Source of the DNA: Octopus sinensis
Lineage: Eukaryota
NCBI RefSeq assembly: GCF_006345805.1
Contig: NC_043017.1
Span: 4,340,001-4,404,000, forward strand
Direction: 5' to 3'
DNA length: 64,000 nt
Positions 24,715 to 35,329 of the stretch are shown here, in pieces. A program made the translations under genes and the position numbers. Each line of letters starts with the position of its first letter. Within the stretch, counting starts at the first letter, position 1. The notes under the pieces were generated by a model. It did no database searches. It saw only the letters and a list, made by a program, of their open reading frames with translations, and had not been told where the DNA came from.

Positions 24715-24789
24715 AGGGTTCTCTCCTCCTGATACGAGACCTCTCACTATTGAACATGATTATTACAACACATTGGAGGATCTTGCAAC
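24715..24789 (+). CDS. vav: Vav acidic-region exon 4a (phase 2-2, 75 nt)
   Basis: Branch-like gctgac at about 24646, long pyrimidine tract, ttgtAG | A GGG TTC TCT CCT CCT GAT ACG AGA CCT CTC ACT ATT GAA CAT GAT TAT TAC AAC ACA TTG GAG GAT CTT GCA AC | GTAAGT = GFSPPDTRPLTIEHDYYNTLEDLA. In frame with the CH exon. Aligns to the Vav G-x-x-PFP...D-I-Y-x-x-L segment (Y142 region). Confidence 0.85.
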
Positions 24790-25778
24790 GTAAGTGCTTG
24801 ATGCAGTCCTTGTCACCCAAGCCTGCTCAATAATCATACACTCACTTTTATGGGTTCAAGGATCAATGTCACCCATCCTCAATCCTCCTCCCAAACCACC
24901 AGTCCATCCATCCATCCATCCGTCCAGCCGTCCTTCCGTCCATCCGTCCGTCCGTCTATCCGTTCGTTCGTTTATCCTTAATTTGTGTCTCTCGCCTACC
25001 CTTCTGCTGTCTGTTGTTTTCATCATTTTATAATATTTTTTTTAAAGTTTATTTTTGTGTTTTTTTTTTTGCATTTGCTAACAGTAGTAGTAGCAGTAGT
25101 AGTAGTAGTGTTAGTAGCAGTAGTATTAGCTGTGTATTGGAGGAGCTGGTGACATCAACATCACATCATGTGTGCAAATGTTCAGTGGCAGAGCACAGCA
25201 GAGCAAAAAAGGAAGTTGTCACAAAATCTGTATTATTAATTGCTGAAAGACTAATCACTACTAACTCTTGTAGGTATATGTGTATATATGTGGGTTTGTT
25301 TGCATGTATGCTCTTATATATATATATAAAAACCTTGTTATTATACTAATCTTGTCTATTGGTGCATTTGTGTATGTGCATAAATTACATGTTAACTCAG
25401 AACTAAACTTTCACGGTTGAAATGGCATTTTCCAGTAATAAACACAGGTAGACTATCAAGTACAACAACACTAAGACAATTGCAAGAACAACAAGTTTAA
25501 TATTTATTACTTCTATATTTCTATTCTGAAATAAGCGCATGGTTTGTTTATATTTAATCAGGTCGACCCTCAGAGAAATTCAAGCTGGACATTAATTAAT
25601 TTATCATATCAATCTCTTTAGTCATGTGGAAGGTGAGGGACCGGAATCCTAATTGGGTACTGCATTTGTCTTCTTCCATAGATACTGTAGGGGAAAGAGG
25701 AAGGATTGTGAGCCCTATGAGCACTGCACTGTGCTCATAGATTACAGATGCTCATAGATTACAGTTACTAAGTGTTAA

Positions 25779-25999
25779 CCCTTTTGTTACTGTATTTATT
25801 TTGAGATGTTCTGTGTTTCTTTCAATTAATTTTAAATATAACAAAGAATTTAGTAAAATAACTTAGTCATCATTAAGCTAGTGTTAGGGACATAAATTGT
25901 GACTAAGGTTTGGTGGGCGATTTTAATTCAAAACTTATGAAAACAAAATATTTGTATTCAGAGCCATAGCCAGTTTCAGCCGGATTGGTAACGAAGGGG
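25779..25999. mobile_element. piggyBac-type MITE, family 2
   Basis: TTAA|cccttttgttac ... gtaacgaagggg|TTAA. Confidence 0.82.
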
Positions 26000-26617
26000 T
26001 TAATGGTGTTAAGGGAGAGATTACACTGTCCTAAAGGAAGCAAAAAGTTGTCAAAGCCAGTTGTTTAGCCTAGGTCAGCTCTGATCCAACTGACATGTGA
26101 TCAAAGGCATTCCACCCATGACCTGCCCATCTTTTCTTAAAGCATAATGTTATTTAGGGCTACATCATTCTATCTTCACTTTTTTCTTATTTATAAGATA
26201 ATGGAGTGGGGTTGGAGGGAGACTTTGCAACGATTCTTACAATGGTTGAGCAACTAAGCTGAAGCTCCCTGCTTGGTTTGTTGTCCTGGATTTTTCTTTT
26301 AATGGTATTGGTGGTGGTGGTGGTGGTGGTGGTAATGTTGTTGATCTTGGTATTGCTGAAGATGTAATAAAGCTGACAACACTTGTTGTTCCCTCTGTTT
26401 ACACTCTATTTCAAATTGTCACTCACATATTTCTCTTTTCTGCCTCTCCCATATCTTTCTCTCTCTCTCTTCTAGGCCTCGCCCCTGCCCCATCTTCTCT
26501 ATTATTCCTCTCTATCTTCCTTCTTTTCGTCCTTCAACACCTCATCTTGTTGAAGAAAGAGATGTGGGTAGAGATTGGTAATCTGAGCTGTCCTGTAGTG
26601 TGTGTGTGCGCGCATGT

Positions 26618-26880
26618 ATATGTATGTATATATATATATATATATATATATATATATATATATATATATGTATGTATGTATATATATATATATATATATA
26701 TATATATATATATATATATATATGTATGTATGTATATATATATATATATATATATATGTATGTATGTATATGTATGTATGTATGTGTATGTATATATATG
26801 TATATATATATATGTATGTATGTATATATATGTATATATATATATGTGTGTATGTATATGTGTATATATATGTATGTATA
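26618..26880. repeat. (TA)n/(TATG)n microsatellite block
   Basis: Direct reading. Similar long blocks at 24120-24215, 28690-28975, 35600-36320 and 38290-38700. Confidence 0.95.
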
Positions 26881-32431: not shown

Positions 32432-32652
32432 CCCTTTAGTGTTCGCACTATTCTGCCAAAATTAATGCTTCTTCATCTACATTGTTTCGAACTAATCATG
32501 CATTATCTTGTAACTATGAGATTTTGATGAGGTAGCTGTTAATTTTTACAATGATATTGTAGGGCTGGTGTGAGAGACCAGATCTGGCCAGTTGGAACAT
32601 AAAACAGGCAGAATACATCTGGCCGGATATGGTCAGTTTAAATGCTAAAGGG
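32432..32652. mobile_element. piggyBac-type MITE, family 1, opposite orientation to 32106-32326
   Basis: TTAA|ccctttagtgttc ... tttaaatgctaaaggg|TTAA. A truncated copy also occurs at about 39585-39780. Confidence 0.85.
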
Positions 32653-33374
32653 TTAAACATAGAAAGAATACTATAGACAATCTGAAGTTGTTACCAGTTC
32701 AAATATACTTAAGATATAACTGAATCTGTAAGAAAGTCATTCACTGTATTTTGTCATAGAGAAAAATTTTTGCTGTAGATAAATTGGTGTAAACACACCT
32801 ATTTGTCAAAAGATAGGTGTAATCCATATTTTGTAGACAATCTAGTCCAACATATCCATGAAAAGATGGGACGATCAGTGCTGGATAACCTTTGATTAGG
32901 TTGGGCCCTGGGCTAAATAACAACTGCTAACTGTGTAGCTATTTAATAAAGTTTCTGTATTTCGAAGACAGAATTGAGTCAAGTTAATGTTTGCTGTGTA
33001 TTCTTGTATTCCTTGATTCTTTTATTGGTTTCAATCCTTGGACTTCAACCATTCTGGCACTTATCACTTTTAGTGATTTTAGTTGATTAGATCAAAGTTG
33101 CAACCTTCTCCCATACTTTGTTGGGCAGTTTTTTCTGTTGATTTCTGTTTATCAAAAGTCTTAAGTTCATTTTGGCATGAACATTGATATGGTTGTTCTG
33201 ATAAGATTTGCACAGCAGATATTTTTGGGTTAGTCACAAACAGATTGAGTTCGATTGGATTAAGGTATAACACTGATGACCAGATCCTGGTGTGATTTGT
33301 TCGAAATCTGTTGCTGGTATTTTGTAGTTTCATTTGCACCAATGTGTAATAGTGATTTGAAAATTTATCTGTTG

Positions 33375-33770
33375 GGTAGAATATCTAACCCTGAGATCTG
33401 TTTGCTTGAGAGAATAACTAGCTACCAGATCTAACTGTTACATAAAAAAGCTAGCTCTCAAAATGCTTGGTAATCGAGTAGAATAGCAAGCTACCTGGAC
33501 AACTGGTTGTTTAGTGTAATGGTTATTGACCAGATGATCTGGGTAGTCTGATAGAATAGCTAGTTACCAGATCAACTGGTAGTCTGATAGAATAGCTAGT
33601 TACCAGATCAACAGGTAGTCTGATAGAATGTTGCGTTACCAAGTCGTTTAGTTGACTGATAGAGTAGGAAGCCACCAGATCATCTGGTAGTCTGGTAGAA
33701 AACTAGACTACTCGTTCATTTGTTTATTAAACCAGCCATCAGATCTGGCTATGGAATAGATTAGCTGACT
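33375..33770. repeat. Degenerate 36-bp tandem array (about 10 units)
   Basis: Unit agtctgatagaatagctagttaccagatcaactggt. Best-preserved copies lie at 33545-33640. Confidence 0.8.
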
Positions 33771-35251
33771 GCTATAATATTTAATATTTGAGTGCTCAAT
33801 TACTAAAAAAAGCTGTCTTCAGTGAATAGATAGATACCAGATCTAGGAATATTACCTGTGATTGGTGGTGTATTCCATGGGATATTAATCTCTTATCCAA
33901 TTGACTCCAGAGCTAGCTAGGTATAAGTATCCAGGTAGCCTGAAATTTGGGGATAAGTGAACTTTACAGACTACCACACCACTTGTTCTCTAAAACATTT
34001 CCTAAATAAAGAATTTTTTTACTAATCTTGTGTTTAAAAATGAAACTTTTATTGCATCTATTCAGTGTTGCAGACAATTTCAGCTACACTCATCATCATC
34101 AGGTGTCTGGATAGGTACATAGTACTAAAATGAATTTGAAGTGGGGAACCTTTATATATTTTTATTACCTTTAGTTTCGAAATAAAGGTACTTGACTGAA
34201 TTGAAACTGTTTCTACTAAATAGGGTTTCTAGTTCAAATTCAGACTGTTTCTGTGTACATATCTAGGAATTAGACACTTGATGGGGATCAAAAATGTGGT
34301 TAATGGTCAGATATTTTGAAGGCAATCCCGTTCCTTTGACACTGGCCATTTTCTGGACTTTCACCCACCTTTCAGCAAACCTGTTAGATGACAACACTCT
34401 CCTATCCACCCTCACTTTCCTTTTCAAGTGAAACTTGAAAAAGTTGATGAGGGTTTGGCCAAAGAGGAAAATAATAATAATAATAATCCCCTCTACTATA
34501 ATAATAATAATAATCCTTTTTACTTAGATTTTTTTTTTACACGATGTGGGGTTAGTTAGTTACATTGGTCTTAATGCTTAACGGGTTTCTATCTCATTGA
34601 TTCCGATAGGATGATAACCTCAGCAGAATTTGAACTCAGAACTTAAAGGCAGATGAAATGCCACTAAGTATTTTGTCCAGTATGATAACAATTCTATCAG
34701 CTAACTACATTCTTAATAATAATAATAATTGCAACAACCACCGTGGATGTAATAAGATAGTCACATTCTAATTCAGGTATCAGGTACTGATCCATGCTTC
34801 TTGTAACCATTCTTCTTTTAACCCTCAACTTTTAACATCGAAACGATACTAATAACTAATCTGAGTGGATGAGAAAAATAAAACGAAACGAAAATATAAC
34901 AAAGAACTGCATTTCAACCAATCAGAATATTCGCTTTATTCTAACCTGTATGGACATTTAATTTCTAGTTTGACCGTTCTTGAGTGTGTGTTATTGTTTG
35001 TGTTGTTGTTGTTGTGTGTTTGTGTGTGTTTGGGCATGTGTTTTCTTCAAATCTAAATAAGTTTGTCAACTCTCTCTCTCCAAACTTCCGCAGTCTGTTG
35101 TTGTTGTTTGGTCTGATGCAATGGAATAGCAGAAGTGGCAGCTGGCTCTGAAGCGATGGTTGTTGATGGTGGGTCACTTTGTTTGGAAGTGGAACCTGTG
35201 ATCATGTGTCTTGTCTTAGCTTAGCTTTTGTGTACTTCATTTGCTTTCTAG

Positions 35252-35329
35252 CGAGTTTCCACCCTTCGTAGAAACCCAAGAATACGATGAGGATGAAGAC
35301 ATTTACAGTAACCTTAAAGAGATGGCATT
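35252..35329 (+). CDS. vav: Vav acidic-region exon 4b (phase 2-2, 78 nt), paralog of exon 4a
   Basis: ttgctttctAG | C GAG TTT CCA CCC TTC GTA GAA ACC CAA GAA TAC GAT GAG GAT GAA GAC ATT TAC AGT AAC CTT AAA GAG ATG GCA TT | GTAAGT = EFPPFVETQEYDEDEDIYSNLKEMA. EDIYSNL matches VAV1 EDIYSGL (Y142). Confidence 0.9.

Follow-up and report, generated by a model that had tools for sequence, protein, structure and literature searches.

In the Rho guanine nucleotide exchange factor (GEF) Vav1, contacts between the Y142/Y160 region and the calponin-homology (CH) domain reinforce the inhibitory helix that carries Y174, and Y142 and Y160 are phosphorylated first. Yu et al. reportedly found in 2010 that the Y174 helix blocks the active site of the DH domain and that the CH contacts involving the Y142/Y160 part, which are released first, strengthen this inhibition about ten-fold. 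In the unphosphorylated protein, the CH domain with the acidic region (CH-Ac) and the C-terminal SH3 domain keep the DH-PH-ZF part closed, and phosphorylation of Y142, Y160 and Y174, each a single conserved site from choanozoans onward, opens it (PMC6562523). Vav has become the textbook GEF in which phosphorylation of tyrosines in the acidic region brings about opening in steps; the region itself is treated as fixed, alternative splicing is not among the regulatory layers listed for Vav, and the words splicing, isoform and exon do not occur in the review of Vav evolution (PMC6562523). Here we describe a 64,000-nucleotide (nt) stretch of contig NC_043017.1 (positions 4,340,001 to 4,404,000; the window), identified by homology as holding the CH-end and acidic-region part of an invertebrate-type Vav-family Rho-GEF gene. 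Within it the exon for the Y142 site is very probably present as two intact, anciently duplicated copies, 4a and 4b, and there is about an even chance that these are used as alternatives.

Tandem exon duplication is a known phenomenon; for Vav it is not reported in searchable papers. Tandem duplicated exon substitution (Kondrashov & Koonin 2001, Letunic et al. 2002; reviewed in PMC9013439 and PMC9741552) involves adjacent homologous exons of the same phase and length class, with shared flanks and old divergence. Exons 4a and 4b are alike in each of these respects and differ from the described events in being known here from genomic sequence alone. In human FYN, with its exons 7A and 7B (cited in PMC9741552), the swapped part is likewise the regulatory linker of a signalling protein, and pairs made exclusive by frame and nonsense-mediated decay (NMD) find their counterpart in the neighbouring pair 5a/5b. 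In contrast to Dscam1, 14-3-3zeta and MRP, where docking and selector RNAs pair, no such pair was found for 4a/4b by the repeat, k-mer and duplex-energy searches described below; unlike alpha-tropomyosin (steric hindrance) and the frame/NMD pairs, 4a/4b are a case for which these mechanisms are excluded. Compared with the acidic region of Vav1 itself (3KY9; Yu et al. 2010, Aghazadeh et al. 2000, cited in PMC6562523), the order of elements is the same, namely the CH end, P-F-P/acidic/Y-x-x-L, an acidic D-L-Y and I-Y-E-(D/H)-L, whereas both coding exons exist here in two versions and the vertebrate genes are described with one. The literature searched contained no paper linking Vav with mutually exclusive or tandemly duplicated exons, and Vav is absent from the supplementary tables of PMC9741552 as far as their text form goes, that is, from the D. 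melanogaster list (Table S4) and the proteomics-detected human events, a portion that does not extend to the full human list.

The two exons at the centre of this analysis are:

24715..24789, + strand: exon 4a, 75 nt, encoding (R)GFSPPDTRPLTIEHDYYNTLEDLA(T), read as the Y142-exon copy that has diverged and is less acidic, with 5 acidic residues, 2 Tyr, 3 Pro and the motif DYYNTL (a YY pair).
35252..35329, + strand: exon 4b, 78 nt, encoding (S)EFPPFVETQEYDEDEDIYSNLKEMA(F), read as the canonical, highly acidic copy, with 9 acidic residues, 2 Tyr, 2 Pro and the canonical motif DEDIYSNL, which aligns to DEDIY142SGL of VAV1.

Each exon begins at the third position of a split codon and supplies the first two positions of the next, and each is followed by a GTAAGT donor; the boundaries read ttgctctcctttttctcaattgtag / A GGG TTC ... 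GCA AC / gtaagtgc for 4a and tttgtgtacttcatttgctttctag / C GAG TTT ... GCA TT / gtaagtat for 4b, the slashes marking the splice junctions. Exon 4a retains the R-G-x-x-P start and the D-x-Y-x-x-L-E-D-L-A end, as in vertebrate Vavs, and 4b retains P-F, the acidic run and DEDIYS-L. As expected of a tandem exon duplication, the two are adjacent, lie on the same strand, share their flanking exons and phase, and are of similar length. The initial annotation of this DNA had proposed duplicated symmetric exons of phase 2-2, 75 and 78 nt long, both with GTAAGT donors and a common pattern around a Y142-equivalent tyrosine. Direct reading of the sequence confirmed phases, lengths and donors, the pattern proved real in the form F-x-P ... 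D-x-Y-x-x-L-x-(D/E)-x-A, the Y142 label was upheld by HMMER alignment to human VAV1, and the duplication itself was borne out by shuffling, by a unique reciprocal match and by the VAV1 alignment, as described below. Both exons have an AG acceptor behind a pyrimidine tract, and the two acceptors differ in strength. That of 4a has a strong, long pyrimidine tract and a 66-nt zone free of AG, with a (CTTT)n run at 24447-24480 further upstream; tracts of this pyrimidine and (CTTT)n kind are putative targets of PTB-type repressors. The 4b acceptor is weaker than that of 4a and has an in-frame AG 27 nt upstream. Use of this alternative acceptor, at 35225 (+), would add the hydrophobic stretch FCVLHLLSS to 4b, and a further AG at 35218-35219 would shift the frame into TAG.

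Because scanning 20 kilobases (kb) of intron offers many chance resemblances, candidate exons were enumerated exhaustively across the entire window as stop-free, phase-matched stretches of 60-99 nt preceded by AG and followed by GT. There were 1,401 of them, 755 from the + strand and 646 from the - strand. Among these, 4a and 4b are each other's best match: their BLOSUM62 scores are 27 globally and 32 locally (p=0.001 and 0.005 against composition-preserving shuffles), while the next best end-to-end score on either strand is at most 6. Local scoring is less decisive, a low-complexity D-run on the minus strand reaching 33 against 4b. A GTRAGT donor combined with at least 15 pyrimidines in the 20 positions before the AG was found in five of the 1,401 candidates, three of them on the + strand, and 4a and 4b are two of these three. 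When the two exons, with their junction residues, were compared with the Y142 segments of VAV1, VAV2 and VAV3, none of 5,000 shuffles did as well, a comparison that serves as a lead only where VAV2 and VAV3 are concerned. Exon 4b is closer to the VAV1 Y142 segment (p=2e-4) than is 4a (p=0.03-0.05). Microsatellites aside, no nucleotide similarity was found between 4a and 4b, either within the exons or in the DNA flanking them; the duplication must therefore be old, and over such a time an unselected or unused copy is expected to lose its open frame and perfect splice signals. These comparisons identify 4a and 4b as true homologues of the Y142 exon, and we hold it very probable that they are duplicated, intact Y142 exons of the Vav gene. 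A possible third copy of exon 4, the peptide IFSNLLEMA at 32347-32373, was dismissed as chance, as it has a stop just upstream and lacks splice sites.

The remaining coding parts of the gene in the window were placed with the help of human VAV1, a tblastn search with which located a short exon for the end of the CH domain (14925-14980); the relevant stretch of the VAV1 query was confirmed by alignment to PDB. Together with 4a and 4b, the exons are:

14925..14980, + strand: upstream exon E, constitutive, the end of the CH domain; 56 nt, encoding VLYTLSKLSKTELAQKTA followed by the AG of a split codon.
46601..46703, + strand: exon 5a, 103 nt (3n+1), encoding DLPDDHEVYNKETQDDNQQIYEDLCSLKRKSTSQ, with the Y160- and Y174-equivalent sites; donor CAG / gtaaaa.
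52799..52907, + strand: exon 5b, 109 nt (3n+1), encoding ENDLDDNQDLYDVVYDGEEDEQIYEHLCIRHQRFST, the more canonical Y160/Y174 copy; donor ACA / gtaagt.

All five lie on the + strand in the order E-4a-4b-5a-5b, separated by introns of 9,734, 10,462, 11,271 and 6,095 nt; the exon numbers 4 and 5 are an inference of the initial annotation. Exon E has the acceptor tcctatccag and the donor gtatgc (it ends GCC AG / gtatgc), and its product aligns to VIYTLSALSWTPIAQNRG of VAV1. When exons were spliced in silico and compared by phmmer with all PDB sequences, E+4b+5b had human VAV1 (3KY9, 6NF1) as its sole match, at E=6.7e-7, and E+4a+5a had the same protein (3KY9/6NF1) as its top match, at E=7.9e-3. The aligned span covers VAV1 residues 108-178, which are chain positions 111-181, the PDB chain numbering being shifted by three tag residues relative to VAV1. 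In both alignments Y142 of VAV1 pairs with the exon-4 tyrosine of 4a or 4b (HMMER; DEDIY-SGL), and Y160 (DLY) and Y174 (IYEDL) pair with two exon-5 tyrosines. The tblastn searches of the window with VAV1, VAV2 and VAV3 found the exons at 14925, 35252, 46601 and 52799 and no others; neither a CH-domain exon before 14925 nor a DH exon past 52907 was detectable in the window, and exons for the rest of the CH domain, the DH-PH-C1 core and the SH3-SH2-SH3 cassette are not in it. The window, whose DNA is animal, is AT-rich (35% GC) and crowded with microsatellites and retroelement debris, and the introns of the Vav gene measure about 10 kb.

Every junction that these exons can form, E-4a, E-4b, 4a-4b, 4a-5, 4b-5 and E-5, reads through without a stop, the junction codons being Arg, Ser, Thr, Thr, Phe and Ser, respectively. 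The argument of the initial annotation that 4a, 4b, both or neither would all be in frame holds accordingly, as does its expectation that inclusion of both would lengthen the CH-DH linker (by 25-26 residues) and bring additional tyrosines, two being present in each exon. The contrast that it drew with 5a/5b is equally sound. Exons 5a and 5b are of 3n+1 length and both open with TGA in phase 0, so that a 5a-5b junction places an immediate TGA in the message and ends translation there. The two are reciprocal best matches among 2,160 candidate exons, with no third copy, and are predicted from their frames to be mutually exclusive, the choice between them swapping the Y160/Y174 inhibitory helix. 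A frame at about 48986-49050 (+), VPEFEDLYKDLGQDIY / VPEFEDLYKDLGQDIYPY, was considered as a third copy of exon 5 and rejected, having no usable donor and being absent from the bounded candidates; it has a ccacag acceptor in exon-5 phase and two acidic-Tyr motifs, and is possibly a decayed third copy, or chance. The 5a-5b intron also contains an 87-nt open candidate exon (48237-48323, +) in exon-4 phase, bounded by a pyrimidine-rich acceptor and a GTGAGT donor. Its basic peptide, ALLYIIKCNLRRSRPKERKGKKGWYFRL, is unlike Vav, and the candidate could be a chance frame or a cryptic or poison exon.

Conservation could be followed for one of the four duplicated exons. A search of 5.8 billion protein sequences with the spliced exons gave one match, an open reading frame (ORF) corresponding to exon 5a, and no transcript-derived or full-length protein of this gene; 5b and the CH-end exon had no match in the protein database at E<=10. 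The 5a orthologue is a genomic ORF (P0001, on contig L001) in Logan run ERR3431203, from another species. Between the two, the exon and its splice sites alone align, at 81% nucleotide identity, and the introns do not; 13 codons differ synonymously and 4 non-synonymously, one indel of 3 nt leaves the frame intact, and the splice sites are kept. This pattern points to clear purifying selection on 5a, the divergent "a" copy of the neighbouring pair. A scan of metagenome contigs with back-translated exon peptides returned 170 pattern matches, of which 0 were confirmed.

We propose that the exon carrying the Y142 site was duplicated in tandem long ago and that both copies have been retained as intact, well-signalled exons. 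Their alternative use, which we infer, would give a protein with either a very acidic, canonical Y142 module (4b) or a proline-rich, less acidic module with a YY pair (4a). In such a protein exon 4 would supply the priming or modulatory site, and exon 5 the second priming site and the inhibitory helix. Plausibly, exchanging 4a and 4b would make the CH-Ac contact stronger or weaker and shift the kinase and SH2 preference of the site, altering the degree of autoinhibition of the GEF and the range of kinases or SH2 partners that prime it. That the old duplication serves in this way, as a pair of substitution-type alternative exons, we consider about an even chance. It is favoured because the frame-forced pair 5a/5b shows that the gene already uses duplicated exons here as alternatives, and it is supported as well by the single Y142 of the described Vavs, by the divergence of the two copies in character and by the intactness of both. 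An extension of the proposal, in which 4a/4b and 5a/5b form coupled clusters (a with a, b with b) that swap the whole phospho-regulatory module, with an as yet unseen RNA-structure or splicing-factor mechanism acting on 4a/4b, is doubtful. Were it true, one gene would give rise to GEFs with distinct autoinhibition strength and kinase/SH2 wiring, much like the three paralogues of vertebrates.

Several ways of enforcing a choice between 4a and 4b can be set aside. Frame and NMD are excluded, as all combinations are in frame; steric hindrance is excluded by the 10,462 nt of the 4a-4b intron; and U2/U12 incompatibility is excluded, all five exons being GT-AG and U2-type (GTAAGT, GTATGC and GTAAAA donors). 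The initial annotation concluded from the frames that exclusive use would need an active mechanism, and such a choice, if real, would have to rest on trans-acting splicing regulators or on long-range RNA structure. Inverted repeats over three introns were nearly all TA/TG/CA microsatellite arrays, which pair indiscriminately, and non-repetitive 11-mers shared between the 1.5-kb flanks were at chance level. A 13-mer present upstream of both 4a and 4b, TGTTTCTACTAAA, was tried as a selector and discarded: it has no complement in the window and could be due to chance (4 of 100 shuffles). Of the duplex energies between the 300-nt proximal flanks, one pairing alone stood out, that of the A-rich sequence preceding 4a with the (AUU)n tract that follows the CH-end exon, and it is of low complexity.

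TA/TG/CA-rich microsatellite arrays lie on both sides of 4a and downstream of 4b (24106-24339, 26613-26881, 28632-28925 and 35640-35964) and are mutually complementary at 70-84%. Their pairing could loop an exon out of the pre-mRNA, but any repeats of this type would pair likewise. Two foldback elements, probably insertions resembling miniature inverted-repeat transposable elements, lie in the 4a-4b intron, one at 27809-27981 (inverted arms of 85 nt, 95% complementary and 3 nt apart) and the other at 32101-32657 (inverted arms of 230 nt, 78% complementary and 97 nt apart).

A number of observations weigh against alternative use of 4a and 4b and lend themselves to other readings. No docking/selector complementarity rose above the microsatellite background in four types of search, which were made without orthologous introns and could have missed a short real docking site. 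Both exons are strong, and the splice sites at either end of the 4a-4b intron are normal, so that exon definition predicts co-inclusion by default unless one exon is repressed. Tandem exon duplication is common and mutually exclusive use is not, duplicated exons being more often co-included than exclusive (PMC9741552). Exon 4a by itself, with its junction residues left off, also resembles the VAV1 Y142 segment weakly (p=0.03-0.05). If 4a and 4b were both constitutive, the linker would be lengthened and would carry two Y142-like modules in series (…AQKTARGFSPP…LEDLATEFPPF…KEMAF…). The DNA holds no bar to this, given the length of the intron, the U2-type sites, the failure of the searches above to reveal a competing structure, and a 4a-4b junction that is in frame at an ordinary Thr codon; an acidic linker with short linear motifs also tolerates a change of length. 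We nevertheless regard co-inclusion as the lesser possibility, though one of some weight. The Vavs described so far, all the way from choanozoans to vertebrates, have a single Y142 site (PMC6562523), the neighbouring 5a and 5b cannot be joined, so the gene does use duplicated acidic-region exons as alternatives, and 4a and 4b have diverged strongly in charge (5 versus 9 acidic residues), as expected of alternative modules. Should the two always be co-included, the finding reduces to a lineage-specific lengthening of the linker.

In a variant of this arrangement one exon, probably 4b, would be constitutive and the other a cassette, giving isoforms b and a+b (or a and a+b) and possibly a minor form that skips both. 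Lengths of 3n permit it, 4b is the copy nearer to VAV1, and 4a sits behind the long pyrimidine tract and (CTTT)n run, putative targets of PTB-type repressors; the 4b acceptor, however, is the weaker of the two, which is at odds with a simply constitutive 4b, and we judge the arrangement unlikely. Another doubt concerns 4a itself, which might be unused, being a relic of the duplication that is in decay or else an open frame that has good splice-like signals by chance. No orthologue of 4a or of 4b was found in the 5.8 billion proteins (E<=10) or in the metagenome contigs, and the local scores of 32-33 against 4b were also reached once by the minus-strand D-run. Against this, the global score of 27 faces values of at most 6 for all the other candidates, 4a is one of the three + strand candidates that are strong at both ends and lies in the right intron, on the right strand and in the right phase, and it retains the G-x-x-P start and D-x-Y-x-x-L-E-D-L-A end of vertebrate Vavs; an unselected relic that has lost all DNA similarity to 4b should not have kept a 75-nt frame and a perfect GTAAGT. 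An unused 4a is, on balance, very unlikely.

The presence of two intact versions of both acidic-region exons suggests that the autoinhibitory switch itself can be retuned through splicing. If 4a and 4b are indeed used alternatively, the natural a and b variants would be ready probes of how the Y142 module sets the activation threshold, and the gene would exemplify isoform diversity in place of gene duplication, its lineage probably having just one Vav gene.

Elsewhere in the window, scans with Rfam and for tRNA genes gave no matches, and ten long intronic ORFs had no match in Pfam. Simple-sequence arrays extend beyond the exon-4 region. A 2.06-kb (ATT)n array lies in the intron after 5b at 59822-61882 (692 copies, 81% matches, about 10% GC), and shorter (ATT)n, (TA)n, (CA)n and (GA)n arrays occur in all introns, one of them directly after the CH-end exon at about 15000-15060. 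The C-terminal tail of a non-LTR retrotransposon ORF (LSYPDVISRDTGIQQQDLRNAMMDREVWR) lies at 18239-18505 (+) and again at 1191-1433 (-), with 17 relatives in ENA assemblies at 55-73% identity. One of these relatives, L002 in ERZ25072740, adjoins an RVT_1 fragment and Helitron/Pif1 remnants; ERZ25072740 therefore contains DNA of an animal with the same retrotransposon family.

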